Shown: positions 29,460 through 64,000, counted from the first letter of the stretch. The stretch is 64,000 nucleotides of DNA from Octopus sinensis (GCF_006345805.1 NW_021832606.1:45668-109667); one strand, 5' to 3'. Notes: generated from the sequence alone by a model not told the origin. Made by a program: numbers and translations.

Positions 29460-29699
29460 TTTCTATAATATATAACAACTGCCCACCAAAAATATATTTT
29501 ACCGCGCTAAACAAATTAATTTAATGTTTCTTAAAACTAATTTATAATTAATTAATATAAAGAACTAACTAACTTTTTACTCCATCTTATATAAGTTGTC
29601 TAAAATTACAATTAATTATTTCATACATTGTCGATTTGTTGATCGGAAATATTATTTATTTAATTAATAATAAATTTCAATATTATTGATTAATTAAAT

Positions 29700-30550: not shown

Positions 30551-30823
30551 AAATTACTGTGGTACATTCAGGAATGTCATTATAGATATTCTCAGCTTTA
30601 TGGATCTTAACCTAGCACAATCAACTTTTGTATTGCTCTAATCATTTTTGTGATTGATTAGATTTTTATTTGTATAAAATTGATTTTTATGATATTTTTG
30701 AAATTATCGTAATTCTCAACTTATAAAAGTGTTTTAAAATTAACTCAGAGGATAATAATTCGAACTAGAAAATGGCGGATAATAACTGGGAGAATATCAC
30801 ATGTAACATTACTAATAAATGTG

Positions 30824-32367
30824 TTAAAAATTAACTCCAAGAGCGAACTGAAATCCCCGACAAGTCCTAAAAATAATAAGACAGACGACCTGTCATGAGC
30901 AGCCGACACAACCGGCACCACAAAATTGCATTCGACACGACACACATTGGCCAGTGAAGTGACCATCCCCACCCCCACAGCCAACCTGTAATCCCCCAAC
31001 AACTCAGACACGCCAGAAAATGCACAAGACAAGGCCCCACTATTGACAAACGTTTGGAGAGTAAATAATCGGTTGAGAGGATGTGAGGACGACAGAAAGG
31101 GGAATGGGAAATACAAATGAGCGTTGGCAGTCCAAAAGACATTCCCGCCGAGCATTGCGTCTACATCCATTACATCACCAATTAACCATCGGAGGACGGA
31201 CCCAGCCCGTTCAGTTGAAACCCCCGCAGCCTCAACGGCCCTCCGTGGAAATACCGGTCGCAGAGGTTGGACTCCCCCGAACCAGGCAAAACAATTCCGC
31301 CGCCCAATTTCAACTCGATAAGCTACACAATCATCTTATTAATATACGTATTTTTCTATCGGTTCGACACACGCAAGCAACGAAACTTCATTGCTCACAA
31401 AACAAGTATCCCCTCCCAGTCCAGCCAATTCCTAAATATATTACAATTATTAATATTGGAAATATATCGATGTGGAGACCTGGGTTAACTTGAAAGCGAA
31501 TCCGGGTGTGGGGACGAGGAGATCCGCACAAGTGGACGTAGAGAACACGTGCTGGAAAATAAAAAGAATATTACTTTGATGGAGGACTTGAGACTGTGTC
31601 CGAATTGTCCCCTCACGTCGAAGGATACGTCTTTCCCACCCAGTCCACCCAAATGTCTCCACACTCCCTCCCAACGAAGGCTGTGAGTACCAAATCGGGA
31701 GTTTGTCTGCAGTTAAGGGACCCCCTAACCAAATACTCAGCCAAGATCCCCGTTCCCGTAAGTCTGGATGTGTTCCAATCATGTTCCTGACTTTGACGGA
31801 ATAACTCAATAGATATTCTTAATATTTCTACCAAAAATGACCACCTTTTACTAAGATCAAAGCCGAATGGTTTCTCGGCCTTCAAAGAGAAGCTTTCTCC
31901 CTCAGTCCCACAACATAGGAAGACGACAATTCCTCGCACCTTCCGAGCGTGTTGGGCATATTCAGACTCCAGCTCTGCACACTCAGTGCAATAACAAACC
32001 AGAAAAGAGTCGGATTTGCCAGTAGACACGTCACAACTTCCCGTCAGTCGGCCTTTCTCCTTCACATCAAAGGTTATGTCGTAAAGTGAAGGTTCCTCAG
32101 TGTTGGTCGTACCCACCACTACGTCAGTCTTGCTGAATATTCCCAGAGAGTCCAATTTGAGCTTAGTTTCATGGGCCTTGGTGATCATCTGCCTTGATTA
32201 GATCTAGTGGGGTCACCAACGTCCTTCAAGTTCGAACATTTGAATAAATCACGAATGTAGTTTATTAGGAAATGTCGTGATGTGCGCGATATTCCATCAA
32301 AGTGCACATTTTCCACAAAAGCAGGGATATTCTCTAGTTTGGTTATATTCGCCGAGTCGTTGGTCAT
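30824..32367 (-). CDS. SAMM50: Sorting and assembly machinery 50 (Omp85 family)
   Basis: [17 protein letters not shown]..., KLDSLGIF, then barrel [19 protein letters not shown] and RVECNF. A 23-nt intron gives the beta-signal end DR|[13 protein letters not shown]. Confidence 0.9.
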
Positions 32368-32669
32368 CTATAACGTGGATAACAAACACGCCAAAAGTTG
32401 AAAATTTTATTATAATCAAAAATTTGTATCAAATGTCTGAAAAAGAAATGTAAAATATTATTTCTAGGACCTTAAATTACAAAATACAGTTGTTAATAAA
32501 AATGTGGAATCTGGTCTATGGCGCATACTCGGAGAAAGAATTCTTTTTTAATGCTAAAGTCATTATTAAACAAATTCTAATGAAACCAGAAATTGCGTTT
32601 TTGCGGTTCGTTCTTGACACAATAAGTTCGCTAAAATTCGAAATATTTAAAAAATAGGTTTGTCCTCGA

Positions 32670-35307
32670 ATGTCCATAACTATTTCTGAACCGACTCAAA
32701 AAACAATTTTACTTCGAGTGGTTGTGCCAAAAACTAGTTCCGAAGTATTCACTTTGGTCGAATTTAGAAAGTAATAGAAGTCTGCCCATCCGCCTCCATT
32801 TGGGATGTCAAAACTCAAATAATCAATGAAATAGGCCACGTCAGTAAACTCGGAGTTTGACCTTAGCAGACTTTGAAGGATCCGTACAACTATGAGCTCC
32901 ATCTCCACTCCAGACCCTACCGGGAGGGGGCGTTCCTGGAGGAGTCCAAGCATTTAAACGACTACCAAGTCGAATTTCCGATTGACACGATCACGGTTTG
33001 CCTACAGGACTAATCTTAGTTCAAAAAAATGAATATAAAAAGAAAACTCGGAAAAGTTTGATTGCCATTTCACTTTTAGAAAAACCTGTCAAAGTTATTG
33101 AGTCACATTAAAGACAACAACTTGGAAATGGTCAGGAAAATCATTTCGTTGAGGTACAACATCAACGTGATCGACAAAGAGTCCGGAGGTTTGTCGTGTA
33201 TTGTAATTGGTAGAGACACCATTGACCTTGGCCTCGCAAATCGGGGCGACGAGTTCTATAATCTCCGAAATGCACAAATATGGTGGATGCTTGTCTTATA
33301 GAAATGCCGAGTCCTTCGCTCCTCTCCACAAGGCGGCCCAATGCAACAATTTCCATGTCATCAAGGTATAGTAACGCACTCATCCTAGACACTCGTACAC
33401 CTGGGGGGCTCGACCCTCATCAGGGACTGCTTCAACCTCACTCCTCTCTACTATGCTGTCAAAAACATATCAAATCCAAAGCTGATTCAATTCCTGCTCG
33501 AAAACGGGTCTCCTGTCAATTGTGTGGACAGTACTGGCAAAACAGAGTTACATTACGTTTATGGTCTGCTTACTCACAGCGCAGGCTTGCACGTTTTGTT
33601 CCCTTGAGGCATTCGAGTTGCTGTTGAATTACGGGGCTGACATCAACGCGGAGGACGCAGAGGGCAACACTTGTCTTCATATTTGTGTCAAAATGAATAA
33701 CGTATTTCCCACTATCACCCTCAGGCCACGGCTGTAGAGTTTTTGCTTCGAAAGGGGGCCAATCCGGGACTGTTAAACTTGGCGATGATGTCCCCGTACG
33801 ACCTCGCTCTAAATAGTGACAAAAAGTCAATTTTGTCACTTTTTCCGGGAAAAAACAGTATTTCAGCAACTCTGAATATTAGTGACTACGAACCCTAAAG
33901 TCAGGTCTGACCGGCCTCCAAAACTGAGTCAACTAAAGTCTAACTGTACGATGATTTCTGCTTGGGAAAGCACGAAGAGTATGAAATTAAGTCCAAAGTC
34001 TTTCATGGGTTCATTAAATTCACTTTTTTCAAAAAAATCAATTCTATCAAAATACTCACTCAGTTCTGTGTCAAGTTATCTTGTCGTGCCATAAACCTAA
34101 AGGACTGAGACTGGACTGCTCTGACTCGATCGACCTCCAGTCAATGGAACCGACTGCTAAATCATACGTCACCAAAACGCTATGGTTTTGCAGGCGATTC
34201 AGAAAATGTGGAATAGTTATTAGAGGAACTACAAGTTTGACACGTGTCTTTGAAGCTTGATAGAGAAAAGGAAACCAGAAGACCTTGATTCGGGGTTCTG
34301 TTCGATTCCGTCGTTCACTTTTGTCGAGTTAGTGGAGAAAGGGTCTGAAGAAATAAAGGCTGGTTTCAGGAAAAATGACTTTCTACTGGAGGTTACTCAT
34401 ATTTGTCGTCCATTAGTAAGATTGACGGGGTCGACGTACGATGTATGCACAAAACCAAGGTCCAAAGCATTATTCGCCAACGTGGAGTTGTTCAAACTTA
34501 TAAAATTGCCTACGTCGAAGGCTCTGATGTGGCTGAGTCTGAGTACTTAACAAACCACTACGAAAGAACTCTGTCCACATTGACAACATCAAGAATTATT
34601 TCAAAGTGACAACTATGGTGTATTTTAGGCCAAAAACCACAACTAGAAAATTGGAAAGTCTAATGAAGGACTACCCTCCTCCGGATACCTTCTCTTACGA
34701 GACAATAAAGACAATTGTTTTGCCCTCTTCTTTGAACGCCCAGACGCGTATAATTCCCAAAAATGACATTTCCCCTCCTGAAGAGTTTATTTCAAAATTC
34801 CCAGAACGTGTTATATCAACTCCGAAAAAAAATTACACGCTAATCAGGGAACTTAAGCAAGTACTAAAAACAAGACAATTGCGAAAACAATCCTCACTTC
34901 CTCAGGAGATCAAATCTGACCGTTTGAATCAATTCAGACATAAAACTCACTCCATGTCCTCGCAAGGTGGAGAATCTGGTTACGTAGATTCTGTGAAACA
35001 GGGAAACGTGCTAACATACTCCACAAATTCCGATTCTTTCAACCACGGTGAAAATGGAAATTCTATCAGACAAAAATTATTTTTAAAATATGGAATTGAT
35101 CCAAAATCTCTAGATGAAGACACCAGTGAAGGGGTGGCGATGCCCGTCAGTAGCAAAATCGCATATTCATCTCAGGCAACTCTCCCAACGAACACGAGAG
35201 CAAGCAATAAAAAACAGGATTTGACTTTGACACTGTCTTCAAACAGAATATCAAGATGGGTCGTTGGTGACATGTCGCCGCAAGGCTTTAAATATACCAA
35301 CTTTTAA
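32670..35307 (+). CDS. SHANK: SHANK-like scaffold (SPN domain, ankyrin repeats, PDZ; no SH3 or SAM recognised)
   Basis: LLRVVVP...SIWDVK...TLKDPYNYELH...GAFLEESKHLNDY (SPN); ETPLTLA, PLHKAA, LTPLYYA and GNTCLHIC (ANK); GIVIRG...AGFRKNDFLLE|IDG (PDZ); long Ser-rich tail. Confidence 0.8.
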
Positions 35308-36138
35308 AAACCAAATAACTTGTTCTTATCGTTAAAAGCAATAAAAGTTATTTTAAACCCGCTATATTAATAATCAAACTGAGTCTGTATGCTCTTTTAA
35401 TTGATTTACTAGTTGAATTCTATAAAAGGGTTTATATTTTTAAATTAAATCAGTTTATGAGAAAACCTTCAGTATTGTAGGTCTAGGGTCAAATGCTCGA
35501 CCTCATCTAAGGTATTTACAATTATTAAAGTTTTTTAGGAGAAATTTGATTTCGATTATTTTTTTGCTTTAAATAGAACGTTTTCGTGGGATTTATGACA
35601 AATTATACTATTCTACAACAAATGTCGGAACTTAAACTTAAGGGAATTTTAGTAGATTGATGATTCCTATTTGTACTGAGATTAAATATTTAAGAGACCA
35701 AATTTAATTAATTAATCAATAGAATTTTTTTTATTTGAATGCTAAAAGAGAGCTTTAATTGAGTCATTCAGAAAAATATGAATCAATCATTAAAAATCTG
35801 TTCTTATTCAGAACCACTAAATTTCATCAAACTCAGTGATCGCCTTTCGCTAGGTGACTGTTATTATATTTTGAAAATTCTATTTAGGCAATACTAATTA
35901 ACTTTTTCTATAAAATCCTTAGACATTATTGATTATATATCAGGAAGGGATAATTTCTCAAGGAAACAGACAAAGTAACTCCAGATGTTCTGCAGTCATA
36001 AAATCGTATTAAAAATTAATTTAGTAAATTGTTATTTAAACATCAGCTTGTTTAAGAAAAGGAAAATTCGATTAGCGAAGTGACGCTCAGAAAAATATTT
36101 AAACATATGTGACACTTTTTTAAGCACTCGTGTGCATA

Positions 36139-43291
<7,153 letters not shown>

Positions 43292-45199: not shown

Positions 45200-46500
45200 T
45201 GCCCAAATTGCCTTTGAAACCAGCCGGAAGAGCGAAATTTTTGTAAAAATTAGCAAAATTTTTGTAAAAGAGACCACTAAATAGACCGGACGTCGCCTGG
45301 ACTAGATATACACCGATTTTTAAATACATTGGCAGAAACATCCCGATTGGAAGCAGGAACAACCGAAAGAGACACGTCAAAATAATCTCTGTGTTTATTA
45401 CTTCTTAGTCGAAGTCGACGTTGTTCGAACTCTTCCTGATCACTGCCAGATTTATCATCTGCTCGACGCGAGCACAGCGGAGACATTATGGAGTTGAGTA
45501 ACTTTCTTGATCTCGTCTTGAGACCTTTTTTCTTCCTATTCTTTAGCCTATCACCAGGAATTTCCTTGGGGAAGCGAGGACCAACATCTGAGAAAGTTGT
45601 TAATTGAGTGTCAGAGGCATAAACATAATGGAATATTGCTCCTTCAATGCATCATGAGGGAAACACACGACCTTCAACATCACAACCAACCTCCTCAATG
45701 GAAGGAACAACTGAGCACACGCCGGGCCTCGGCAACTCTTAATCGAGGACTACCTTCCAATATCCGATCCAATAACCTATCAGAAGATAGTCTGGTTGGG
45801 TGAGGGGATGAACAAACTACAGACATAAGAAGAGCAGGACAACAATCGTTTTCCATTGCATCGAATGTACCACTCGATCGAGCAATCCGTTCAATTTCAG
45901 CTTCAAATGCCTCTACTTTGAGAAGGAGGAGAGAATTGCTTTCCAAAACAGCCGAGTGGGAACGAAACAGAGAATGAATACGATTCTCCAAAAAAGTATT
46001 CGGTGGGTCAGCACAATTATTGTGAGGAGGCTGAAAGGACTTTAAATTAGTCGCATTTAGTTGAGTCTCCATTATAGACGAATCAGGATGTATTTCACTC
46101 AGATGGGAGTGTTGGAGTGTTGATGAGAAGCCAATGGATCCTTGTTATTTTCAGTTTGACTTCATCAAGTCTCTATCGCAGAGGCAATGGATGTGAACTT
46201 ATATGTTCCCCTGTCCAAAGTCTTATATTGTACCTGCCCTACCTTTCTTCTCTAAAAGACGTGATAATTGGAGAAGACAAGCATCCTCTTTGGTTTGCTG
46301 GCCAAACGCGAATCTGTTCTCTTACGGTCCTGAATGACCGTATAAACAATTTGAGAATCCTTTTCCTTCAAAAATTGCGATAATCAGAGATCCTGGCAGT
46401 TTAATCCTATCATCATTTCTCTCATACAAACCAGGAGGGACTTACAGTGACACACACATAAAGAGTAGACCACCTATTTCTGGGCATCCTAAAAAGTTTT
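45200..46500 (-). CDS. Probable unknown multi-exon gene(s)
   Basis: Open blocks 45695-46072 and 45277-45486, charged C-terminal run and candidate micro-introns. No family recognised; limits uncertain. Confidence 0.3.
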
Positions 46501-46639: not shown

Positions 46640-48111
46640 ATGAGGACAAGTCGACATATAGAAGTATATATTTTATTTGTATTTCAGACTAAAAAATCAA
46701 CAACTGTGCCATCGAGAGGCACTAATCCAACACTTCGAAAGACGGGAGCAAGTAAATCTATTTTTAAATCAGACATAGCGACCAAAAAGGCAGAAAGGAA
46801 ACCGTGGGACATACGAGGCCGGCTCGAAGATTTAGAGCTGCAATTCGAGTCAATAAACAAGGAGAAGACGGAGATTTGCTCAAAAAAGGAAAAGAACTCG
46901 ACTGAACTGACCAGCAAAATATCGTATTAATAAATATTCATGTTAAGATTATTAAAACAACAACTCAACGACTTGCACTCTCGAGAACAATCCAAGGATG
47001 ACGAATTGAAATCACTCGAGAAGGAAAGACAGTTTCTAGTCGAACAAATAGAAAGACAATGCGAGAATGTTGAAAGAATAACAACACTTACTGATTTGAT
47101 GAATGTACTCTAGTTCTCTCACTGTAGGCTGGAGTGTGTCAGTCTAATAAGAAAGCCCAGGTCCTCTCAGCCGAGTGGGCTACCAAGAGTGATCAGTTAA
47201 AGAAGGAGGTGATGGAAATTGTAAAATTATCAATGAAAGTGGAATTTTTAAAGGGAGGATTATTGTGATGAGGTTTCAGGGGGGTGTGAGAGTAGTCTGT
47301 CTTGTCAATTCTCCTGAATGCGGGGAGGCGATAAAGATCATAAATTCCCAGCAAATCTCAACAAATAGTCTTCCTCTCAAGCAAGTATAATTACTTTTAT
47401 TCACACACAGTTGAATGGAAGGAGGGATATACGTCCAAATAATTACAACTTTGACATTGTGGTGTGCGGAGAATATTCTGTGGACCAATCTCTACTCAGA
47501 GCAGCCGCATGGGGACAGAATGTGTGTGTTTGTGTATATGGACAAACCTCGGAAAGATTACTACTTCAGTCTATTGAAGAAATAAAAAAGCTGACGAGTG
47601 AAGTGAAGAGAATCGGGGGAGAGTGTAGTCTGTTTTTCTCTGCAGTGGATTTTGAAGATGGGGACATGATAGACTTGCTTCAAAATAGCAGTCGAATCTC
47701 TAAAGAGGTGTCTACTCTATGTTTGGATGAGGATGTCCTTAACCTCGAGTTTGGAGAGAAGAGGTTGGGAGTCCACCGTGTCTTTCAAATCACGATATTT
47801 AATAAGAAGGCAGAGAGGAACGGATTCTTTACATTAGTGGACCTGTCTGTGAATGCAGTGGACTCATCAACTGACGACTTTAATGAACTGTGTTGTGCTC
47901 TGGCTGGCAAGAACACAGTCATTCCACGTCCCAAGACTAGGCTAACCAAGCATATGGAACACATTTTGGTGGCTGGGTGTTTCGTAGTATTTCTCGTCGG
48001 TATATCTTCGATGTGGAGTGATATAGAACAAACTATACTTTCCTTGAACTATGCCAGAAAAGTAGAGATTTGGGTATATATTACTAGATCTATAAAGCAC
48101 GTGTCATCTGA
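46640..48111 (+). CDS. Kinesin-14 (KIFC1/Ncd-like) protein with degenerate motor domain
   Basis: Basic tail, RKPWDIRGRL (cf. KIFC1 RPAWDLKGQL), coiled coil, GGVRVVCLV neck, YNFD, VCVYGQT, DLL, HRVFQI, TLVDL, RLTK and LNYARK. Last exon (ARK|IYKARVI*) inferred. Confidence 0.75.
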
Positions 48112-48160
48112 ATGCACTAAATTAATCCTTCCAAATCAATCGAATTTATCAATATTATGT

Positions 48161-48793
48161 TTATTGTAGATATGTAGCCTGGCGGATTGCCAAACTGTTT
48201 CCCCGGATAATGGCAATCGAGAACCTTGCATTAGCCAGTCCGCCTCCCAGGGTGCGCATTGAGATTTTGGCTCCGAGCTTGCGAAGGAACTTTTCAGTTT
48301 TTGGACCGAGAGCACCCGACGTCTCCGCCGCGATCGGCACCACGGAAAAATTCTCCGAGAGGGCAGAATATTTAAAAAGCTTTAAATCTTCAGCCTTCTT
48401 AGCTGCAGATTTAGCCTCCAGAGCACACGAAGTTAAGTGAGAAGCAGAAAAGGTGTCCCAGCAGGTTGCATCCCATACGAGGCCTTTTCCGCCTTCAAAG
48501 GGAAAAAGGGTTATCCCGTCAGGACGTTTCCCGTCGCCGCGGTCAAGACCCGGTGGTTCGAGAACCGAAGGAAATCCCGCCGAGTCGAGGGCCCTCCGTA
48601 TGATGTCAGCATAGCAGAGTGCCTCGGGAAACGTCCGGCACTCTTCTTGCACAATAAAGGGTGCAGACCGAAAGGGTCAACAGTGCAGCCACAGCGGCAC
48701 GTGTGCGGGACACATTGCCTTAGTCCGAGTCGCAGAGAGACTCCGATCCTTACCGCTTCATCGTCAAGGAGAGTGCCAGAAGAGGAAGGAAAA
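48161..48793 (-). mobile_element. 3' fragment of CRE-like RLE retrotransposon (zinc finger + RLE)
   Basis: LRLG...HTCRCG...GLHPLLC...RH, then [15 protein letters not shown]...LVWDAT...AE..KL.KY...PIAAETSG. One frameshift. Confidence 0.75.
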
Positions 48794-51700
48794 TTTTTAT
48801 TTTAAATAATTAGTTAGAGAGGCTGTTAGTGAGGTAACATAAGGAGACCTTCGGCATTCCTGCCTTTTCGGTCCAGCACACACGCTCGCCTCTCTACACA
48901 ACCACAGGTTAGGACTTACCGTCTTACCTGCCACCCAGTCATTATCTTCTCTAGGACCTCAGGGAGGCCTTTGAGGGACAATTCCTGGGCGTTGGAGAGC
49001 TCATCACGCCATCCTAAGCCATAGGCTAGCCGGATGGCTCGTCTTCTTACTTTCTTAAGCGCGTCAACGTACTTCTCCCTGTCCTCGCAGAAGTGCCAAG
49101 CGTGCACGCCATAGGTTAACACGGGTAACACCATGGCGTTGAACACACGAACCAGGCACCTCTCCTCAAGTGGAAAGCACGCAACGCGCCTAATCGCAGC
49201 ATTGCACGCATTTTAGTACGTGCAATGTGATCATCGAACTTACCTGACTGCTTGAAGACCACGCCCAAGTAAGTCGTCCGATCAACTACAGCGATCGCTG
49301 ACCCGTCCAGCGATAACCTAGGGATAAAATTAGTGTAACCCCTCGTCCTTTTACAGACTTTAAGGACACTGCACTTGTCCACACACATCTTTAGACCCCT
49401 ACTCCCACACCAGTTTACAAGTTCATCCACAGCAACCTGTAGCCTACGACACGCACACTCTGGTTTCATCGACTGATCCCAGAGGATAATGTCGTCTGCA
49501 TAGATCACCATTCCAGTACGAGCATTGACTGGCATAGGTGCAGAGGCCATAAAGATATTAAACAGTGTGGGACTCAGCACAGAACCCTGAGGGACCCCGC
49601 GAAGGACTGTTGCGACTTTAGAAAAGACCCCCTGGTGTCGCACGACCTGACCGCGAGATTCGAGGAACCCCGACAGCCAGCGCCTTAGACACGGAGAAAC
49701 CCCACACGTGGCGAGGGAACTCCGCAGGCCGTCGTGCCACACCGAGTCGAAGGCCTTTTCTATGTCAAGACTAACTAACATACCACACTCCCTTTTCTGG
49801 AGGGCGTTCTTCATTTCGGAAGACACCTTCCACAAGCAGTCTCCACATGAACGACCCTCCCTGAAGCCCCATTGGAACTCCGGGAGGGCGTCAACCACCG
49901 TCAGCTCCTCCAGGAGCCTTCGGTGCATGATCCTTTCTAGGATTTTAGATATAGCGGGAAGCAAGGAAATGGGCCTATATCCCCCGGGGACTTCATGAGG
50001 CTTCCCAGGTTTTCCAATGAGGATTACCTCAGCCACTTTCCACCTGGAAGGAATCATCCCAAGTCGCAAGCTCCCGCTAAACAAAACCTGTAAGGCCGTG
50101 ATCAACAACGGCGGGGCCTTTTTGAAGATGGACATAGGGATCCGATCTAGCCCCGCCGCGGTGTTCTTACTTCGGGAGATCGCTGCCAGGATCTCCCTTT
50201 CGGAAACTTCGCCTGCATCGACCCTTGATATGTCCAGCTGGCAGCGCTTGTCCCAAGACAATACCTCCTGGATAGTAACAAAAGACGACGTCTCTACGAA
50301 CTGACTTCCGTCAGTTCCCGAGATGTTTTGAGGTGGGTTGAAAATATATCAGCCACCTCAACCGGGTCCGAGGCGAGGGTTCCATCAGAGCGCTTAAGGC
50401 GCACTGACTTTGCCTCCCCTCTCCCCGACAGGCTCTTCAGTTGTTTCCAGAAGTCCGGAAAGCGCGGGTCCACTCTTTGGCAGGCCCGCTCCCACCGTGA
50501 ACTTTCGTGTTCACGGATTTCCCTCCGGATCTCCCTTTGAAGCCGGCTGATCCAGCCGCGAAACCAGACACGGTTCTCCTGGTAGACGCATTTGTCCCGC
50601 AGTCTGGACAGCCGGCGCTTGAATCTAATTTTATTTAGCACCCGGTACGGGAGCGTGGAATGTGCCTGGCCCTGTACTGGGTTCTGTTTGAAATTATCTC
50701 GCATATAATCAGACAGGGCAGCATTGATTCCATTATCTAACGCCTCCAACTCTCGTATGTTGGCGCAGGTATTCCCACCAGAAGTGAGGGCAACCTGCTG
50801 GCCATGAACCTCTCCAGGTTGGCCCAGGAACCGGACCGGAGGTCAAAGTATCCTGGGGCCCTTTGAGGAACTGGCTCACGGAGTTCGTGCAATAGAGGCA
50901 GATGGTCGCTCCCAATATCAGGCAATAAGATTGTGTTACTAACCCAATTTAGCATCCCGGGGCTGACCAGAGCAAGGCCTAGCCAGTCTTGTCCTCCCCG
51001 CGAATCGATGTGGTTTGGCTCGCTTGAAGATCTGAATTCCACCCGAGGTCTTCAACCAGCGTCTTTAGAGCCAAACCATGCGCGTTGGTTACCCTGAAAC
51101 CGAGCTCTTGGTGCTTGGCATTCAGGTCCCCAACGACCATCGCCTTCGGATGCTTTCCAAAGAACTCCCGTACGTGCCAAGAACACGCCGTAAAGTTCTT
51201 CGAATACATCGCCCCTAGGTAAAATGTTAAATTACCTATGCGAATCCTCACTTGGAGGAATTCACATAGGCTACAAGAACATAAACCTGAGCTCCGGAGA
51301 GCAAGGTACGGCTTGTAGAAGAGGCTAGTTCCAGTGCCACATGTTGACCCCTGTTTCCAGGGTATGTGACAGCAGTTGTAGCCATCAACTACGTACCGAT
51401 CCTGCTTTAACTTTGTTTCGTTGACCACCAGGATGTTGAGCATCATATCGGCTCCTCGCCAAGGATCTTCTTGGCCTCGGCATAGTTGCGGCGTAGCATA
51501 TCCGCTACACTGCACTTCATCTCCCTACAAAGTGTTATCAGGCGTATACATAACTCCACCGCAGGACTAACACTGTCCTGCGGCACACGCTCGCAAGGGG
51601 GTGAGTGCAATGGCATCTCCACGTATGGAGGAAGCCTTTTCGCCCCCAGGTTTTGCTGGGCGGTGTCACCTGTAGCCGACTCGGAGGGCATCGCAGGCTT

Positions 51701-52921
51701 CGGCATCCGAGCTGACTCGGATGCTTTCACCCGCTTTGCCGGCTTTGTCGGCGACGGCGGTACCGACCCGCTAGCAATGTGGCTCGCAGGCTTCGCCACC
51801 CAAGCGGACTTGGGAGGTTTGGCCTGCTTTGCCTGTTTGCCAGGTTGTGGAGCGGGGGCCGCGACGCTGGGGGTGCGGTGGCTTGCAGGCATCACAGGCT
51901 TCGCCACGCAAGCGGACTTGGGAGGTTTGGCCTGCTTTGCTTGTTTGCCAGGTTTTGGCGCTGGGGCCGCGGCGCTAGGGGTGCGGTGGCTTGCAGGCTT
52001 CACAGGCCTCGCCACCCAAGCGGACTTGGGAGGTTTGGCCTGCTTTACCTGTTTGCCGGTTGGTTGTGCGGGGGCCGCGACGCTAGGGGGGCGACTTACC
52101 TTCGGGATTACATCCCCACCAACCTGTCGGGTTGCCTCCTTGAACTTACGACAACCCTTGAAGTTGGCAGTGTGTCCTAACTTACCACAGTTGACACACT
52201 GCCTCACCATAGGTGGTGAGGGGCATGTCTTGCGACCATGCTCCCCACCGCAGATTAGGATGACGCTCCACCACTTCAAGAGGCGGTTACCCTGCTTGAA
52301 GGTGCAAGGGCAGAGGCACTGGGGTACTCCCGCTGTATGTGTCCTAAAAGATCATTATCCTCGAAGTCCCGGGGGACCCCGAGGAGCAGGACTCTTACCT
52401 GCCTTACCTTTCGTTCAATCCTGACAAGCCGATGCATGCCAGGACCGAACGGGCTGGACTTCTCCAGCTCTCCTTTAAAGCTGAAGAAGTCCTCCTCCTT
52501 CTCCCACCCAAGCAGGAATTGGGTGGGCTCCCTCTTCAGGACTCTATACCGCCTAGATGGCTGTATAGAGTCAAGCGTCCCCAGGATCTTTATGACCGAG
52601 GCCTTTCCACTGGTGGGAAAGACCTCTAGTCTAGCCACCACGCCGAAGGTAATTCTACCCCCGGCGCGAGCGGACTTCTTCGACGGCGGATCCATCTCCG
52701 AAGACGAATTGCGAGAACCTAAGTTGTTAGAAATTGGACGGCAAGCGACACGTTTAGGTTTCCCAACGGTACGCCAGCCGTCCTCATGGGCTACCTGAGC
52801 AGGTTCTACCACATCCCCTTCTGTTCGGGATGGCTTTGCACCCCTTTTTTCTGCTTTAAGATTGTCATTTTTGCGCATCACAGGAAAAACGACCATGCTT
52901 GCACGCTACAATTTATTCAAC
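48794..52921 (-). mobile_element. Near full-length Jockey/I-group LINE (ORF1 gag-like, ORF2 APE + RT), frameshifted
   Basis: ORF1 52896-51443 with CCHC knuckles (CVNCGKLGHTANFKGC). APE NETKL, VVGDLNAKH and GSDHLP. RT YRPISLL, QWGFR, LDIEKAFDSVWHDGL, GVPQGSVLSPTLF and YADD. A-rich tail near 48794-48810. GC-rich against AT-rich flanks. Confidence 0.92.
51783..52090 (-). repeat. 108-bp tandem repeat (~3 copies) coding a 36-aa P/A/K-rich repeat in LINE ORF1
   Basis: caagcggacttgggagg recurs at 51801, 51909 and 52017. Peptide PGKQAKQAKPPKSAWVAKP..PASHRTPS..APA. Confidence 0.9.
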
Positions 52922-54457
52922 CTGATCCTCTGAAAAAATGAGCTCGATTGATATCACACACGTGGAGAAATGAGTAGGGATCTTTATAATTACGCAAATC
53001 TTGCTGAAAATTTTAAAACGCCAGACTAGAGTATATAAAAAGGATTTAGACGGGCTGTAAAAAGCGCATATTATCCAGAAATATTTCAAACTGATCCCCT
53101 TAAAAAATGAGCTCGATTGATATCACACACGTGGAGAACTGAGTAGGGATCTTTATAATTACGCAAATCTTGCTGAAAATTTTAAAAAGCCAGAATAGAG
53201 TATATAAAAAAAATTTAGACGAGCTGTAAAAAACGCATATTATCCAGAAATATTTCAAACTGATCCCCTGAAAAAATGAGCTCGATTGATATCACACACG
53301 TGGAGAACTGAGTAGGGATCTTTATAATTACGCAAATCTTGCTGAAAATTTTAAAAAGCCAGAATAGAGTATATAAAAAGGATTTAGACGAGCTGTAAAA
53401 AACGCATATTATCCAGAAATATTTCAAACTGATCCTTGAAAAAATGAGCTCGATTGATATCACACACGTGGAGAACTGAGTAGGGATCTTTATAATTACG
53501 CAAATCTTGCTGAAAATTTTAAAACGCCAGAATAGAGTATATAAAAAGGATTTAGACGAGCTGTAAAAAGCGCATATTATCCAGAAATATTTCAAACTGA
53601 TCCCCTGAAAAAATGAGCTCGATTGATATTCACACGTGGAGAACTGAGAAGGGATCTTTATAATTACGCAAATCTTGCTGAAATTTTAAAACGCCAGAAT
53701 AGAGTATATAAAAAGGATTTAGACGAGCTGTAAAAAGCGCATATTATCCAGAAATATTTCAAACTGATCCCCTGAAAAAATGAGCTCGATTGATATCACA
53801 CACGTAGAGAACTGAGTAGGGATCTTTATAATTACGCAAATCTTGCTGAAAATTTTAAAAAGCCAGAATAGAGTATATAAAAAGGATTTAGACGAGCTGT
53901 AAAAAGCGCATTTTATCCAGAAATATTTCAAACTGATCCCCTGAAAAAATTAGCTCGATTGATATCACACACGTGGAGAACTGAGTAGGGATCTTTATAA
54001 TTACGCAAATCTTGCTGAAAATTTTAAAACGCCAGAATAGAGTATATAAAAAGGATTTAGACGAGCTGTAAAAAGCGCATATTATCCAGAAATATTTCAA
54101 ACTGATCCCCTGAAAAAATGAGCTCGATTGATATCACACACGTGAAGAACTGAGTAGGGATCTTTATAATTACGCAAATCTTGCTGAAAATTTTAAAAAG
54201 CCAGAATAGAGTATATAAAAAAGATTTAGACGAGCTGTAAAAAGCGCATTATATCCAGAAATATTTCAAACTGATCCCCTGAAAAAATTAGCTCGATTGA
54301 TATCACTCACGTGGAGAACTGAGTAGGGATCTTTATAATTACGCAAATCTTGCTGAAAATTTTAAAACGCCAGAATAGAGTATATAAAAAGGATTTAGAC
54401 GAGCTGTAAAAAGCGCATATTATCCAGAAATATTTCAAACTGATCCCCTGAAAAATG
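52922..54457. repeat. 169-bp tandem satellite, 9 units + 18 bp
   Basis: ctgatc(c)cctgaaaaaatgagctcgattgatatcacacacgtggag... starts at 52922, 53091, 53260, ... 54440. Confidence 0.97.
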
Positions 54458-55787
54458 ATATACTGCCCACCAAAATATATTTTACCGCGCTAAACAAATT
54501 AATTTAATGTTTCTTAAAACTAATTTATAATTTATTAATATAAAGAACTAACTAACTTTTACTCCATCTTATATAAGTTGTTCTAAAATTACAATTAATT
54601 ATTTCATAAATTGTCGATTTGTGATCGGAAATATTATTTATTTATTAATAATAATTTCAATATTATTGATTAATTAAATTTCAGCAATAAATACGCAAGC
54701 GGTAAAAAATAAATCAAAACGCAGAAGCATTATCAATAATGTGCTTCCTTTCAACACGTACCTTCATTCCCTCTAATTTCTCCAGAATTGACAAACTGAG
54801 ACTGATGTGGAAATTCTTGGCACCAACTCCAACCACGACCTGACGGACCGCCAACTAAATTTGGTGTTGACTGCCTTCCTCAGACTTGCCTCGCCAAGTC
54901 CGAATTCAAACTGATTTTATAAAAATCCTGTGTTTGGAGGATGGGTGGTTTCCCTGCTTTTTGAGTTGGGGAGGTCTGACTGAGTGTTATAATATCCCAA
55001 TAAATTGTTACCTGAGTAGTGTAAGGCAGCAACACAAATTGATTGATCATTGGAAACCAATATTTGGTTTAATATTATTGACCAATCTATTGAGACATTC
55101 GATATAGTTCCATCCAAAGTACATTCGAAAAGTCGATTTTACTCAAATGTGATAAAATCAGCTTTTGTTTTCCTGTCGAAATATCGGATTTTAGTTTATT
55201 TTAATAAATATTAATGGCCATGACTGATATGTCTGTACATTTAGTGTATTTATTACGTCATTTTACCATTCAACAATGTCATCTCACTTGTCTTGACGTA
55301 CAAAACTTACGTCTCTCATAAAGTTCATTTTTATAGTTAAATGCACATACGTCGACAATCCAAATGTATAAAATAAACCGACTTTTGAGAAGTAGGTGTA
55401 TTCGAACAATATGATCATTCGAAATAGAAGTAGCAAAGTTGAAGATTGACTCGATGGACACATCAGAAATGTAGATTAACGTAACTTACACATCATGATT
55501 GGAGAAAAGGCAGATATAAATTACTGTGGTACATTCAGGAATGTCATTATAGATATTCTCAGCTTTATGGATCTTAACCTAGCACAATCAACTTTTGTAT
55601 TGCTCTAATCATTTTTGTGATTGATTAGATTTTTATTGTATAAAATTGATTTATGATATTTTTGAAATTATCGTAATTCTCAACTTATAAAAGTGTTTTA
55701 AAATTAACTCAGAGGATAATAATTCGAACTAGAAAATGGCGGATAATAACTGGGAGAATATCACATGTAACATTACTAATAAATGTG

Positions 55788-57331
55788 TTAAAAATTAACT
55801 CCAAGAGCGAACTGAAATCCCCGACAAGTCCTAAAAATAATAAGACAGACGACCTGTCATGAGCAGCCGACACAACCGGCACCACAAAATTGCATTCGAC
55901 ACGACACACATTGGCCAGTGAAGTGACCATCCCCACCCCCACAGCCAACCTGTAATCCCCCAACAACTCAGACACGCCAGAAAATGCACAAGACAAGGCC
56001 CCACTATTGACAAACGTTTGGAGAGTAAATAATCGGTTGAGAGGATGTGAGGACGACAGAAAGGGGAATGGGAAATACAAATGAGCGTTGGCAGTCCAAA
56101 AGACATTCCCGCCGAGCATTGCGTCTACATCCATTACATCACCAATTAACCATCGGAGGACGGACCCAGCCCGTTCAGTTGAAACCCCCGCAGCCTCAAC
56201 GGCCCTCCGTGGAAATACCGGTCGCAGAGGTTGGACTCCCCCGAACCAGGCAAAACAATTCCGCCGCCCAATTTCAACTCGATAAGCTACACAATCATCT
56301 TATTAATATACGTATTTTTCTATCGGTTCGACACACGCAAGCAACGAAACTTCATTGCTCACAAAACAAGTATCCCCTCCCAGTCCAGCCAATTCCTAAA
56401 TATATTACAATTATTAATATTGGAAATATATCGATGTGGAGACCTGGGTTAACTTGAAAGCGAATCCGGGTGTGGGGACGAGGAGATCCGCACAAGTGGA
56501 CGTAGAGAACACGTGCTGGAAAATAAAAAGAATATTACTTTGATGGAGGACTTGAGACTGTGTCCGAATTGTCCCCTCACGTCGAAGGATACGTCTTTCC
56601 CACCCAGTCCACCCAAATGTCTCCACACTCCCTCCCAACGAAGGCTGTGAGTACCAAATCGGGAGTTTGTCTGCAGTTAAGGGACCCCCTAACCAAATAC
56701 TCAGCCAAGATCCCCGTTCCCGTAAGTCTGGATGTGTTCCAATCATGTTCCTGACTTTGACGGAATAACTCAATAGATATTCTTAATATTTCTACCAAAA
56801 ATGACCACCTTTTACTAAGATCAAAGCCGAATGGTTTCTCGGCCTTCAAAGAGAAGCTTTCTCCCTCAGTCCCACAACATAGGAAGACGACAATTCCTCG
56901 CACCTTCCGAGCGTGTTGGGCATATTCAGACTCCAGCTCTGCACACTCAGTGCAATAACAAACCAGAAAAGAGTCGGATTTGCCAGTAGACACGTCACAA
57001 CTTCCCGTCAGTCGGCCTTTCTCCTTCACATCAAAGGTTATGTCGTAAAGTGAAGGTTCCTCAGTGTTGGTCGTACCCACCACTACGTCAGTCTTGCTGA
57101 ATATTCCCAGAGAGTCCAATTTGAGCTTAGTTTCATGGGCCTTGGTGATCATCTGCCTTGATTAGATCTAGTGGGGTCACCAACGTCCTTCAAGTTCGAA
57201 CATTTGAATAAATCACGAATGTAGTTTATTAGGAAATGTCGTGATGTGCGCGATATTCCATCAAAGTGCACATTTTCCACAAAAGCAGGGATATTCTCTA
57301 GTTTGGTTATATTCGCCGAGTCGTTGGTCAT
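55788..57331 (-). CDS. SAMM50: SAMM50, second copy
   Basis: ORF-track translations identical to 30824-32367 at offset 24964. Confidence 0.85.
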
Positions 57332-57633
57332 CTATAACGTGGATAACAAACACGCCAAAAGTTGAAAATTTTATTATAATCAAAAATTTGTATCAAATGT
57401 CTGAAAAAGAAATGTAAAATATTATTTCTAGGACCTTAAATTACAAAATACAGTTGTTAATAAAAATGTGGAATCTGGTCTATGGCGCATACTCGGAGAA
57501 AGAATTCTTTTTTAATGCTAAAGTCATTATTAAACAAATTCTAATGAAACCAGAAATTGCGTTTTTGCGGTTCGTTCTTGACACAATAAGTTCGCTAAAA
57601 TTCGAAATATTTAAAAAATAGGTTTGTCCTCGA

Positions 57634-60271
57634 ATGTCCATAACTATTTCTGAACCGACTCAAAAAACAATTTTACTTCGAGTGGTTGTGCCAAAAACTA
57701 GTTCCGAAGTATTCACTTTGGTCGAATTTAGAAAGTAATAGAAGTCTGCCCATCCGCCTCCATTTGGGATGTCAAAACTCAAATAATCAATGAAATAGGC
57801 CACGTCAGTAAACTCGGAGTTTGACCTTAGCAGACTTTGAAGGATCCGTACAACTATGAGCTCCATCTCCACTCCAGACCCTACCGGGAGGGGGCGTTCC
57901 TGGAGGAGTCCAAGCATTTAAACGACTACCAAGTCGAATTTCCGATTGACACGATCACGGTTTGCCTACAGGACTAATCTTAGTTCAAAAAAATGAATAT
58001 AAAAAGAAAACTCGGAAAAGTTTGATTGCCATTTCACTTTTAGAAAAACCTGTCAAAGTTATTGAGTCACATTAAAGACAACAACTTGGAAATGGTCAGG
58101 AAAATCATTTCGTTGAGGTACAACATCAACGTGATCGACAAAGAGTCCGGAGGTTTGTCGTGTATTGTAATTGGTAGAGACACCATTGACCTTGGCCTCG
58201 CAAATCGGGGCGACGAGTTCTATAATCTCCGAAATGCACAAATATGGTGGATGCTTGTCTTATAGAAATGCCGAGTCCTTCGCTCCTCTCCACAAGGCGG
58301 CCCAATGCAACAATTTCCATGTCATCAAGGTATAGTAACGCACTCATCCTAGACACTCGTACACCTGGGGGGCTCGACCCTCATCAGGGACTGCTTCAAC
58401 CTCACTCCTCTCTACTATGCTGTCAAAAACATATCAAATCCAAAGCTGATTCAATTCCTGCTCGAAAACGGGTCTCCTGTCAATTGTGTGGACAGTACTG
58501 GCAAAACAGAGTTACATTACGTTTATGGTCTGCTTACTCACAGCGCAGGCTTGCACGTTTTGTTCCCTTGAGGCATTCGAGTTGCTGTTGAATTACGGGG
58601 CTGACATCAACGCGGAGGACGCAGAGGGCAACACTTGTCTTCATATTTGTGTCAAAATGAATAACGTATTTCCCACTATCACCCTCAGGCCACGGCTGTA
58701 GAGTTTTTGCTTCGAAAGGGGGCCAATCCGGGACTGTTAAACTTGGCGATGATGTCCCCGTACGACCTCGCTCTAAATAGTGACAAAAAGTCAATTTTGT
58801 CACTTTTTCCGGGAAAAAACAGTATTTCAGCAACTCTGAATATTAGTGACTACGAACCCTAAAGTCAGGTCTGACCGGCCTCCAAAACTGAGTCAACTAA
58901 AGTCTAACTGTACGATGATTTCTGCTTGGGAAAGCACGAAGAGTATGAAATTAAGTCCAAAGTCTTTCATGGGTTCATTAAATTCACTTTTTTCAAAAAA
59001 ATCAATTCTATCAAAATACTCACTCAGTTCTGTGTCAAGTTATCTTGTCGTGCCATAAACCTAAAGGACTGAGACTGGACTGCTCTGACTCGATCGACCT
59101 CCAGTCAATGGAACCGACTGCTAAATCATACGTCACCAAAACGCTATGGTTTTGCAGGCGATTCAGAAAATGTGGAATAGTTATTAGAGGAACTACAAGT
59201 TTGACACGTGTCTTTGAAGCTTGATAGAGAAAAGGAAACCAGAAGACCTTGATTCGGGGTTCTGTTCGATTCCGTCGTTCACTTTTGTCGAGTTAGTGGA
59301 GAAAGGGTCTGAAGAAATAAAGGCTGGTTTCAGGAAAAATGACTTTCTACTGGAGGTTACTCATATTTGTCGTCCATTAGTAAGATTGACGGGGTCGACG
59401 TACGATGTATGCACAAAACCAAGGTCCAAAGCATTATTCGCCAACGTGGAGTTGTTCAAACTTATAAAATTGCCTACGTCGAAGGCTCTGATGTGGCTGA
59501 GTCTGAGTACTTAACAAACCACTACGAAAGAACTCTGTCCACATTGACAACATCAAGAATTATTTCAAAGTGACAACTATGGTGTATTTTAGGCCAAAAA
59601 CCACAACTAGAAAATTGGAAAGTCTAATGAAGGACTACCCTCCTCCGGATACCTTCTCTTACGAGACAATAAAGACAATTGTTTTGCCCTCTTCTTTGAA
59701 CGCCCAGACGCGTATAATTCCCAAAAATGACATTTCCCCTCCTGAAGAGTTTATTTCAAAATTCCCAGAACGTGTTATATCAACTCCGAAAAAAAATTAC
59801 ACGCTAATCAGGGAACTTAAGCAAGTACTAAAAACAAGACAATTGCGAAAACAATCCTCACTTCCTCAGGAGATCAAATCTGACCGTTTGAATCAATTCA
59901 GACATAAAACTCACTCCATGTCCTCGCAAGGTGGAGAATCTGGTTACGTAGATTCTGTGAAACAGGGAAACGTGCTAACATACTCCACAAATTCCGATTC
60001 TTTCAACCACGGTGAAAATGGAAATTCTATCAGACAAAAATTATTTTTAAAATATGGAATTGATCCAAAATCTCTAGATGAAGACACCAGTGAAGGGGTG
60101 GCGATGCCCGTCAGTAGGAAAATCGCATATTCGTCTCAGGCAACTGTCCCAACGAACACGAGAGCAAGCAATAAAAAGCAGGATTTGACTTTGACACTGT
60201 CTTCAAACAGAATATCAAGATGGGTCGTTGGTGACATGTCGCCGCAAGGCTCTAAATATACCAACTTTTAA
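57634..60271 (+). CDS. SHANK: SHANK-like, second copy
   Basis: Identical to copy 1 except three substitutions in the tail (S>R, L>V, F>S). Confidence 0.78.
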
Positions 60272-61109
60272 AAACTAAATAACTTGTTGTTCTTATCGTT
60301 AAAGGCAATAAAAGTTATTTTAAACCCGCTATATTAATAATCAAACTGAGTCTGTATGCTCTTTTAATTGATTTACTAGTTGAATTCTATAAAAGGGTTT
60401 ATATTTTTAAATTAAATCAGTTTATGAGAAAACCTTCAGTATTGTAGGTTTAGGGTTAAATGCTCGACCTCATCTAAGGTATTTACAATTATTAAAGTTT
60501 TTTAAAAGAAATTTGATTTCGATTATTTGTTTGCTTTAAATAGAACGTTTTCGTGGGATTTATGACAAATTATACTATTCTACAAGAAAAGTCGGAACCT
60601 AAACTTGAGGGAATTTTAGTAGATTGATGTATCCTATTTTTACTGAGATTAAATATTTCAGAGACCAAATATAATTAATTCATCAATAGAAATTCTTTTT
60701 TTTATTTTAATGCTAAAAGAGAGCTTTAATTGATTCATTCAGAAAATATGAATCAATTATTAAAAATCTGTTTTTATTCAGAACCACTAAATTTTATCCA
60801 ACTCAGTAGTCGCCTTTCGCTAGGTGACTGTTATTATATTTTGAAAATTCTATTTAGGCAATACTAATTAACTTTTTCTATAAAATCCTTAGACATTATT
60901 GATTATATATCAGAAGGGGGATAATTTCTCAAGGAAACAGACAATGTAACTCCAGATGTTCTGCAGTCATAAAATCGTATTAAAAATTAATTTAGTAAAT
61001 TGTTATTTAAACATCAGCTTGTTTAAGAAAAGGAAAATTCGATTAGCGAAGTGACGCTCAGAAAAATATTTAAACATATGTGACACTTTTTTAAGCACTC
61101 GTGTGCATA

Positions 61110-64000
61110 ATGTCACTCGAAATAAGCAACCTACAATGTGGAGATACGTCAGCCTTTGGCGACATTCTCGACATTTACCTCAAAATAAAATTCAAAGGTT
61201 AAACAAATTTTACTCCAATTAGTCAATTTACTTGTTTATATCATTTTTAGGACGCAAAAAACAGACTCAGGTAATCAAAGGAGAGACAAAACCAAGATGG
61301 ACTGAGGTTAAGTCGATGACTGTAAAATAGAAATTATATTTTGCTGCTGAAGAACTTAGAGAAAGCGATGAAATCTCGATCACAGTTGTTGAATGGCAGA
61401 GAATAGGCAAAAACAAGTAGTACGTATAATAATCTGTAGGCATATTGGTACTGTTCAAACCATGTTGGAGGAGGTCGTTAAGACGGGGTCGGCAGAATAT
61501 CACCTTTTACTCGAACATGACAAGGCCAAGTCCGCGGTTTAGTAGCTTGAATATTCACCATAGTCCGTTTTTGTGGAGTTTAGTGTAAAATACGAAAAAC
61601 AAGGCATTGGTTCGAATGAAGCTGAAAGAAAAGCATCCTTTTATCGTATTTTTGAAAAATATACTCCTAAGCTCTCTACGACCATATTTTGGACACCGGA
61701 ACGGAAAAGTCTGAACAATTTAAAGAATCCTCAATTCGAAAAGCTAATTTTCTGAACAATTTATCGTCCAAAAAAGAAACTTTTCAGGTATTTTGGATAT
61801 TATTTTACAGGATTTAGGTGAGGGTCAAAGTTGTTGGGGCCCGCAACCTCCAGGGAGGAAACATAAGGCCAATATGCAGAATACTCTTTGGCCGCAAAAG
61901 AGACAGACCAGTGCAAAAAAGGGGAGTCAAAATCCAGAATGGAACCAAATTTTTTATTTTAATTTGTACATTTCACAAAAAGATTTGATGGAAGAAATAT
62001 TAGAATTTCAAGTTTAATTCTTATTGGATTAATCCTTGCAGGTTTTTGACTCGAAAAAACTAAGATCAGATGCATTTATTGGCGGCTTTAAGGCACTTTT
62101 TATTAAACTAAGCTAAAAGTGTGACATTGGAATAATCTACAAAGAAGAAGCCCACGCATTCGTCAACAAGTGGCTATTTCTTCACGTACCAAACGACGAT
62201 AGTCCAAAGGGGTTCTTAAAGACTTGTGTAGCGATTGTGGGCATTGGAGACGAGCCTCCAGTCTTTGTGAATTGTTCCGACGATGACATTGAATCGTCTA
62301 TTTTTAACTGTCAAAATTATAGGAATCTATTAAAGCCTGCGGGCGTAAATCTACGTCAGCATAATTTGGCTCTCAAATTATATTTGGCTGAGGATTTATG
62401 TCAGAGTGCTATAAATTGATTCTAATTATATTTAGTGGATTCCCAGTCTTATTCCACAATGAGAAAGTTATTCGGAGTAACAAAAGATGCCGAGAACTAC
62501 GTCGACCCCTACGTGATTTTTTCTTTTGCGGGGAAAAATGTAAATATAATTTTGATCATTTTAAGGTTAAATCAAGTGTCCATACCGGGACTGCTCGTCC
62601 GGATTTTATGGAAAGACTAAACATTAGCTTTATGGTAAATTTCAAGTCACAATTAGTTTCCTTCTTTGTGCGAAAACTTGAAAGTCACAATTATGGATTG
62701 GTTGTAAAAACTTGGTAACTAATCTTCAGGGATCGGATTACCGAAGATGATATAATCGGAGTATGTCCTCTCGCACTATCTACAATTTCAGCTTCTGGAG
62801 AAAATGGTTCATAAAGTTGTGAATAGTCTGGACAGGTTTTATGCCCACGTTTGGTCCTGCATATGTCAATATTTATGGTTCACATCGAGAATTCAAACTA
62901 ATGAACAACAAATTGGAATGTCTTAATAAAGGAAAGGGGGAAGGCTGTTCATATCGCGGAAGAATTCTATTCGAGCTACAAACAGTTCCACATGAACAAA
63001 AAATGACCCAAGTGACTCCTATCCCTGAGGAAGAACAAAAAATGATTTCTGTTCTTTTTTATAACTAAACACAGAGTTATATGGAAAGGCATAAATACAT
63101 TTTATATGGCATGATTCAAAGTGCAAACCTTATTAAGGAGAATAACGGACTTGTTCACTTTGAAATTAGCATTGGTTGTATCAGAGTTTTTATTTAGGAA
63201 ATTATGGAAATAGTTTCCCTGAAAAAATATATCCGACGTCAGTCACAGGACAGTTCTCTCCATTTTATGACGAAAACAATTATTTTTATATTCCATTCGG
63301 CAGCAGAAAGCCAGCATTGAGACTTGAATGTCATCTAGAGGACATTACTTACCGAATTGAGGCAAGTAATCAACTCAAGTATATTCTCAAAAAATTGGTA
63401 TGCCCTTGAAATAATAAATTATAGACTTTACTCATAGTTCATATTCAGGAAAACCATCGAAACGACATTGAATATTTGAAACAAGCGAATGATGCAATTG
63501 TAGGGATTCGCGATTTCATCGACATGTGCCAGTTGTATTAACCCCTTCATTCTTAAGGGAGGACATCCCGACACTTGGAGGAAGAACAGACACTCTACTT
63601 GACATTAAACTTTATGAAATGAGGAAAGATAGTCTGAAAAGTATTGCACTTCGCGCATTGAAATTGATGCGGACAGCAACTCAGATTCAAATCGTTCTCG
63701 ACGAACTAGAAAAATATGCCTATGAAATACAGAAGCTTATAAACGACGTAAAACATTCGAAATAAAGATCTTAGCCACAACTGTCAATCCCTGATGTTAT
63801 CATTTGGATGATTTCTGAGCAAAAAAGAATTGCATTTGCTAGAATAAACGCTTGCGAAATATTTTACTCTGAGCATAATTTGAGGATTGGAGAATTTTGT
63901 TGGAAGAAAAAAAAGATTTTCCTATACGTTCACGTGATTAAATCATCATTTCAGAGACCTGCACTCAGGAAAAAATATAAACATCAACTGGCCAAGATCG
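61110..64000 (+). CDS. Ferlin, second copy, 5' part; 1-nt deletion in the C2B exon as assembled
   Basis: Matches 36139-39031. gccgcaaaagagacag versus gccgcaaaaggagacag in copy 1 shifts the frame near 61895 (real or sequencing error). Confidence 0.75.

Follow-up and report, generated by a model that had tools for sequence, protein, structure and literature searches.

A kinesin-like gene of KIFC1 descent that appears to have lost its nucleotide pocket, in a probable dicyemid contig of the Octopus sinensis assembly

The DNA analyzed here (the window, 64,000 nucleotides) comprises bases 45668-109667 of VCDQ01012447.1, an unplaced contig of 109,667 bp in assembly GCA_006345805.1 (Octopus sinensis), and reaches to the end of this contig, on which the exon-1 ORF of the Mre11 gene described below is recorded at NCBI. 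The features of the window are collected in Table 1. The kinesin-like gene that is the subject of this work corresponds to positions ~92307-93778 in the coordinates of the contig. Its upstream neighbor on the same strand is a ferlin gene, one exon of which matches myoferlin and dysferlin around residues 1500-1625 (E 1e-21 and 1e-19) and which extends to both sides of that exon. Downstream, a non-LTR retrotransposon (LINE) lies in convergent orientation; ~50 nt separate its 3' end from the kinesin-like gene's stop codon, and it may have disturbed the 3' end of that gene. The GC content of the LINE (51-55%) stands out from that of its flanks (33-40%), and one of its ORFs is proline/lysine-rich with a zinc-knuckle-like CxxC..H..C stretch. 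A satellite of ~9 copies of a 169-bp unit, most of them 95-97% identical, separates the LINE from the second copy of a ~9.56-kb direct duplication, which starts right after the satellite and reaches the contig end. The two copies share 99.25% identity and may have arisen by tandem segmental duplication or reflect an artefact of the assembly. Because the kinesin-like gene sits between them, the sequence past the end of the contig could contain another copy of this gene. Elsewhere, a second satellite contains ~42 copies of a 59-bp unit (~95% identity), with a GC skew of -0.52 over 4001-6000. Four long ORFs of 125-233 aa have no Pfam match; two of them are present in both duplication copies, and one of these two has no PDB match either. 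Rfam and tRNA scans of the 64-kb window found nothing.

Table 1. Features located in the 64-kb window (positions counted from its first nucleotide)
Feature	Position	Strand	Remarks
Satellite, 59-bp unit	3947-6438		
Long ORF	20847-21515	-	no Pfam match
Mre11 nuclease gene	~27500-29470	-	at least two 26-nt GT..AG introns
Direct duplication, first copy	29478-39031		
Long ORF	31613-32188	-	no Pfam or PDB match; in both duplication copies
Long ORF	34606-35307	+	no Pfam match; in both duplication copies
Ferlin gene, one exon	41096-41557	+	
Long ORF	45695-46072	-	no Pfam match
Kinesin-like gene, whole CDS	46640-48111	+	7 exons, 440 codons + TGA; six GT..AG introns removed
Exon 1 (MRTSRHIE)	46640-46663	+	ATG is the first after an in-frame stop
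Intron 1, 24 nt, GTATAT..TTTCAG	46664-46687	+	in frame, no stop inside; retention possible
Exon 2	46688-46923	+	basic Ser/Thr/Pro-rich tail and start of coiled coil
KIFC1-type tail motif AERKPWDIRGRLEDLE	46790-46837	+	from alignment A1
Intron 2, 24 nt, GTATTA..TTAAG	46924-46947	+	TAA TAA inside; splicing obligatory
Exon 3	46948-47104	+	coiled-coil stalk; weak coiled-coil family matches
Intron 3, 23 nt, GTACTC..TGTAG	47105-47127	+	stop inside and frame shift
Exon 4 (..KVEFLKGGL)	47128-47264	+	end of stalk and start of neck
Intron 4, 26 nt, GTGATG..GTGAG	47265-47290	+	TGA TGA inside and frame shift
Exon 5	47291-47384	+	strand β1 of motor-homology domain; N4 at 47301-47312
Intron 5, 26 nt, GTATAA..CACAG	47385-47410	+	frame shift
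Exon 6	47411-48061	+	217 codons; bulk of motor-homology domain
P-loop remnant, YGQT then S	47537-47551	+	GSGKT and the next ~13 residues absent after 47548
Switch I remnant GEKRLGVH	47753-47776	+	consensus NERSSRSH
Switch II remnant DLSVNA	47840-47857	+	AGSE and loop L11 deleted (21-25 residues)
Best-kept kinesin segment, L12-α5-β8-α6 (IPRPKTRLT...LSLNYARK)	47897-48061	+	only stretch matching Pfam Kinesin
Intron 6, 26 nt, GTAGAG..ACTAG	48062-48087	+	uncertain; if retained, ORF extends to TAG 48167-48169
Exon 7 (IYKARVI + TGA)	48088-48111	+	
LINE (non-LTR retrotransposon)	48161-52900	-	reverse transcriptase 49116-50261; endonuclease fragment 50979-51515; proline/lysine-rich ORF 51443-52279
Satellite, 169-bp unit	52916-54460		between LINE and second duplication copy
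Direct duplication, second copy	54462-64000		

The structure of the kinesin-like gene is not apparent from its open frames. In a bacterial-style ORF list, the region 46640-48171 is represented by a single ORF of 252 aa (47411-48169), and the coding signal jumps between the three forward frames at short GT..AG segments. Read as one continuous frame, the region contains about ten stops and resembles a frameshifted pseudogene; this reading was rejected, as the removal of six mini-introns restores one frame from the ATG at 46640 to the TGA at 48109-48111, ends that are identical to those given in the earlier note. All six introns are of the GT..AG type and measure 23-26 nt, five of them starting with GTA, and four must be spliced out because they contain stops or shift the frame. 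A 25-nt GA..AG version of intron 4 gives the wrong frame and was discarded; the canonical 26-nt intron also fits the neck register, its removal producing the sequence LKGGLLVVCLV in exact register with LKGNIRVFCRV. The earlier note had described the junction of YGQT with SERLLLQS as lying within one uninterrupted ORF. This is correct for the motifs that it quoted, all of which fall inside exon 6; the complete coding sequence is obtained by removal of the six introns.

Introns of this size are corroborated by a second gene of the same window. In Mre11, encoded on the minus strand, a universally conserved motif (FSIHG|NHDDP) is split by a 26-nt GT..AG intron (29076-29101), which establishes that introns of this kind are real here. 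The removal of a second 26-nt intron (28857-28882) restores the Mre11 frame at ..DERLRR|, bringing the number of such introns in the two genes to eight. The spliced N-terminus of Mre11 aligns with animal MRE11 across 99% of its length, with 58-60% identical residues, and is far better conserved than the kinesin-like protein. Among animals, myxobolid myxozoans and Dicyema japonicum are the only ones reported to possess introns shorter than 30 bp (PMC13644364), and dicyemid introns have a median length of 27 bp (PMC6543705). The D. japonicum genome, sequenced from the host Octopus sinensis, has ~5,000 genes, 36.7% GC, 6.2 introns per gene and 49% repeats, with many LINEs (PMC6736024); the GC content of the window is 37.8%. 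Taken together, intron size, GC content, LINE load and the octopus host indicate that the contig is very probably DNA of a dicyemid renal parasite included in the octopus assembly. Cephalopods also host renal ciliates. A ciliate with a reassigned genetic code was considered and rejected: the long exons are free of TAA and TAG, the frame shifts need real introns, and the LINE, the ferlin gene and the KIFC1 tail motif fit an animal. A myxozoan origin is unlikely, since the contig stems from a sample of octopus, which is the host of dicyemids (PMC6736024).

The origin of the gene was examined by comparison with KIFC1 and other kinesins. The human KIFC1 query agrees in 356 of 357 residues with PDB 5wdh and is 97-100% identical to database KIFC1 proteins. 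In BLASTP the 440-residue protein aligns to it with E 5e-9 in one colinear alignment running from the stalk to the C-terminus (residues 110-434 with KIFC1 237-660), and the motor region alone is found by tblastn with E 2e-4. Identity to KIFC1 is 20-23% over the full length, within an overall range of 20-27%; in the motor region it amounts to 27% to human KIFC1 and 21-25% to yeast Kar3. Two alignments, one with KIFC1 and Kar3 motor domains and the other with seven full-length vertebrate KIFC1 proteins (A1), agree with each other: tail motif, coiled coil, neck and the region up to helix α6 follow one another in the protein colinearly with KIFC1. The tail motif ERKPWDIRGRLEDL aligns with KRPAWDLKGQLCDL of KIFC1 (consensus KRPAWDLKGQLxDL / RP(A)WDxKGxLxDL), and its R45, W48, D49, G52 and D56 are invariant in all seven vertebrate proteins; this motif is regarded as specific to KIFC1 as against KIFC2/3. 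It is followed by a coiled-coil stalk of ~125 residues with heptad character and by the neck, where LKGGLLVVCLVNS is in exact register with the consensus LKGNIRVFCRVRP, and where L180, K181, G182, V186, C188 and V190 occupy invariant columns of the KIFC1 alignment. The retention of tail motif, coiled coil and neck, proposed from the bare sequence in the earlier note, is thus seen directly in the alignment with vertebrate KIFC1 proteins.

Within the motor region the signatures FD.V, VC..YGQT, DLL, H..FQ..I and L.DL, and the segment α4-α6, are still recognizable. The Pfam Kinesin profile (PF00225) matches residues 379-434 at profile positions 268-324 with 25.8 bits (E 6e-6), under its gathering threshold of 29.3, and the protein has no Microtub_bd match. 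Matches among PDB sequences are weak, the best ones all being kinesins with the kinesin-14s KCBP, Kar3 and KIFC1 on top. The KIFC1/kinesin-14 origin claimed at first reading is borne out, beyond what chance would produce, by the colinear BLASTP alignment, the Pfam Kinesin match and the kinesin character of the best PDB matches, and descent of the gene from the KIFC1 (kinesin-14A) lineage is supported by these sequence comparisons.

The nucleotide-binding motifs, in contrast to the parts named above, have been lost or replaced. The adenine-binding N4 motif RVRP (RxRP) reads LVNS. At the P-loop (N1), GQTGSGKT, with the consensus GQTxxGK(S/T), is reduced to GQTS followed by a gap of 17-18 residues, and GSGKTFTMEGGPGGDPQL has no counterpart. 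The KIFC1 alignments reproduce the direct junction, recognized before, of YGQT with SERLLLQS, as well as the 43-residue stretch behind it, in which ERLLLQS...MIDLL runs without gaps against EGLIPRA...VRDLL of KIFC1. In switch I (N2), where RLGVH takes the position of SSRSH, no residue of the consensus is kept apart from the E and the last H, and in switch II DLAGSE is cut to DLS, then 21-25 residues are missing before VNA; the loss of both switches had likewise been read correctly. Beyond what was listed then, the loss covers the N4 motif, ~36 residues around L8/β5 and the whole switch II/L11 loop. Deletions relative to KIFC1 comprise 6 (in α1), 17, ~36, 4, 4 and ~21-25 residues, all of them in frame, so that the motor-homology domain has ~260 residues instead of ~345. 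Neither coding potential for GSGKT, SSRSH or DLAGSE nor a hidden exon for them was found anywhere within the 64-kb window. As far as sequence allows a judgement, both ATP binding and ATP hydrolysis can be excluded. Human KIFC1 and the Kar3 proteins of S. cerevisiae and Ashbya have the same residue in 145 alignment columns; here only 40 of these residues remain, while 82 have been replaced and 23 fall into deletions. The share that remains is similarly low for the nucleotide motifs (7 of 24) and for the rest of the domain (33 of 121), which indicates that the erosion is general and not focused on the active site.

Structure prediction was carried out with AlphaFold2. A single-sequence model was of low confidence (pLDDT 48), and Foldseek retrieved only noise with it, no kinesins. 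Exon 6 (47411-48061) modeled with an alignment of 33 KIFC1-type sequences (A2) gave pLDDT 69 and pTM 0.71, with strands and helices in the order found in kinesins; the best PDB hits of this model in Foldseek were Ncd, KCBP, Kar3 and KIFC1 (TM 0.6-0.68), in a comparison where the alignment itself carries the fold and biases the model. The protein is therefore described as compatible with a trimmed kinesin fold, which falls short of independent proof.

Several features bear on whether such an eroded gene is maintained. The spliced frame contains no stop in 440 codons, compared with 34 and 31 when the sequence is read in the alternative frames and with a mean of 30.6 (minimum 15) in composition shuffles; the chance of an open frame this long from composition alone is P about 2e-14. 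Codon-position composition is uneven (chi-square 27.6, p 1e-4), with 64% purine at the first position, as in neighboring genes. The marks of a pseudogene are absent: there are no stops and no frameshift, and 6/6 splice-site pairs are intact. The assertion that the frame had been kept therefore stands, with no in-frame stop in the spliced coding sequence and every deletion a multiple of three. Since neutral drift at such divergence would not have left the frame open, we read the locus as an intact protein-coding gene, probably with its translation under selection, and not as a pseudogene.

An alternative is a decaying or dead gene: in the reduced genome of the parasite, a KIFC1 orthologue would have escaped constraint and would still be open by chance, or would be translated without function. 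The equal loss of invariant residues inside and outside the catalytic motifs would fit such a decay, as would the Pfam Kinesin score under the gathering threshold and the LINE adjoining the 3' end. It is also in line with the lack of detectable relatives: the 440-aa model has no match at E <= 0.01 among 5.8 billion proteins, and the large-exon ORF (47411-48166) has, among 1.84 billion cluster representatives, one match to a spurious repeat protein, with no real similarity. Mre11 of the same contig likewise lacks a close relative in the protein libraries searched, so these libraries seem to be without other dicyemid data; their silence says nothing on expression. The gene shares with unitary pseudogenes a strong general loss of conserved residues but, unlike them, has no stop, frameshift or broken splice site. 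Near saturation (20-27% identity), it shows no stops where ~30 would be expected, five or more deletions that are all multiples of three, six intact splice sites and a persistent codon periodicity. We consider decay unlikely on this basis, while granting it some weight.

The absence of the P-loop might also be imitated by errors of assembly or consensus, if the contig is a contaminant of low coverage, or by an over-fitted intron model. The assembly is built from long reads, the contig probably represents contamination of it, and the two copies of the 9.5-kb duplication differ by 0.75%, which would be in keeping with this explanation. Long-read errors are small indels, and a clean in-frame loss of 51-54 nt accompanied by dozens of substitutions does not resemble them. 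In addition, the YGQT-SERLL junction lies in the middle of an exon of 217 codons, where no splice alternative is possible, and the window holds no coding potential for the missing motifs. An artefact of this kind is, in our view, highly improbable.

We judge it rather probable that the locus carries an intact and selectively maintained gene of dicyemid type, a descendant of KIFC1 whose motor-homology domain has shrunk and lost its nucleotide pocket, and whose product would serve as a static microtubule binder or as the subunit of a heterodimer. The sequence suggests that the protein itself most likely binds microtubules without working as a motor. It would dimerize through the ~125-residue coiled coil and, having no ATP turnover, could act as a static microtubule binder, cross-linker, bundler or brake. 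One end would contact microtubules through the basic KIFC1-type tail, and the other through the retained face formed by part of α4, L12, α5 and α6. In real kinesins, loops L8 and L11 contribute to microtubule binding; as both are gone here, while L12/α5 (IPRPKTRLT) is kept, binding of the head to microtubules is not assured. Alternatively, the protein may pair with a catalytic kinesin-14 and form the inactive half of the resulting heterodimer.

This last possibility recalls Vik1 and Cik1, the non-catalytic partners of Kar3, for which heterodimerization and microtubule binding have been demonstrated (PMC3384419, PMC4338441). For the kinesin-like protein both properties are a proposal from its sequence. 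Vik1 and Cik1 of budding yeasts likewise consist of a coiled coil followed by a C-terminal kinesin-fold domain without a nucleotide site, a fold that in our case is modeled. They have no recognizable kinesin sequence, whereas the kinesin-like protein still has some, and there is no sequence relationship between them. As a special case of the preferred explanation, the protein could therefore form a stalk heterodimer with an intact dicyemid kinesin-14 and provide a non-catalytic 'foothold' head. The design it has in common with Vik1/Cik1 (coiled coil, neck, and a modeled C-terminal kinesin-fold domain without nucleotide site) and the functionality of non-catalytic heads in yeast (PMC4338441, PMC3384419) speak for such a partner. 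The deletion of L8 and L11, the lack of sequence similarity to Vik1 (no Vik1/Cik1 chain appears among the PDB sequence matches up to E = 1) and the small gene number of D. japonicum (~5,000; PMC6736024), which may mean that this is the only KIFC1 orthologue, speak against it, and we regard it as quite doubtful. A tblastn search with the motor found no second kinesin gene and no catalytic kinesin-14 paralogue within the 64-kb window. The check for an intact paralogue, proposed in the earlier note, was thus carried through for the window, which holds none.

The wider scenario, in which dicyemids independently turned a KIFC1 paralogue into a dead head of the Vik1/Cik1 type that pairs with a catalytic kinesin-14 as an asymmetric motor with one active head, is similarly improbable. 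To our knowledge, the one-active-head design of kinesin-14s has so far been found only in budding yeasts. The idea of an animal equivalent needs a qualifier: the contig belongs to an octopus assembly, but its gene structure is that of a dicyemid, a parasite that evolves fast and whose genome is reduced.

Judged by the catalytic features that define kinesin motors, the protein does not count as one, its descent from the KIFC1 lineage notwithstanding. The closest architecture is that of KIFC1 / HSET / XCTK2, with which it has in common the order of its parts: basic tail motif, coiled coil, neck LKGxxxVxCxV and C-terminal motor-type domain. Compared with KIFC1 (~670 residues) it is shorter, with 440 residues, a reduced tail and stalk, no nucleotide motifs, and L8 and switch II/L11 deleted. 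Kinesin-derived proteins reported to be without motor activity include plant KAC/KCA (kinesin-14 related), KIF26A/B, Costal-2 and VAB-8. These are likewise scaffold or binding modules of kinesin derivation without productive ATP turnover, but they belong to other kinesin families or kingdoms and most of them keep a recognizable P-loop region. We know of no animal kinesin-14A of the KIFC1 type among them, and a full-text literature search on pseudokinesins found no animal kinesin-14 case.

A 110-kb contig of the Octopus sinensis reference assembly thus probably consists of dicyemid contaminant DNA, whose introns of 23-26 nt make genes resemble frameshifted pseudogenes to ordinary ORF and gene callers. 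Examples of kinesin-derived proteins that no longer hydrolyze ATP already exist in yeast and some further kinesin families. If the reading preferred here is true, an animal KIFC1-type protein that lacks all four nucleotide motifs, and whose gene is still open and spliceable, would represent a natural experiment on which parts are needed without motility, the surviving ones being tail motif, neck and α4-α6 face. It would also bear on spindle organization in an organism with a body of ~30 cells and with ~5,000 genes.
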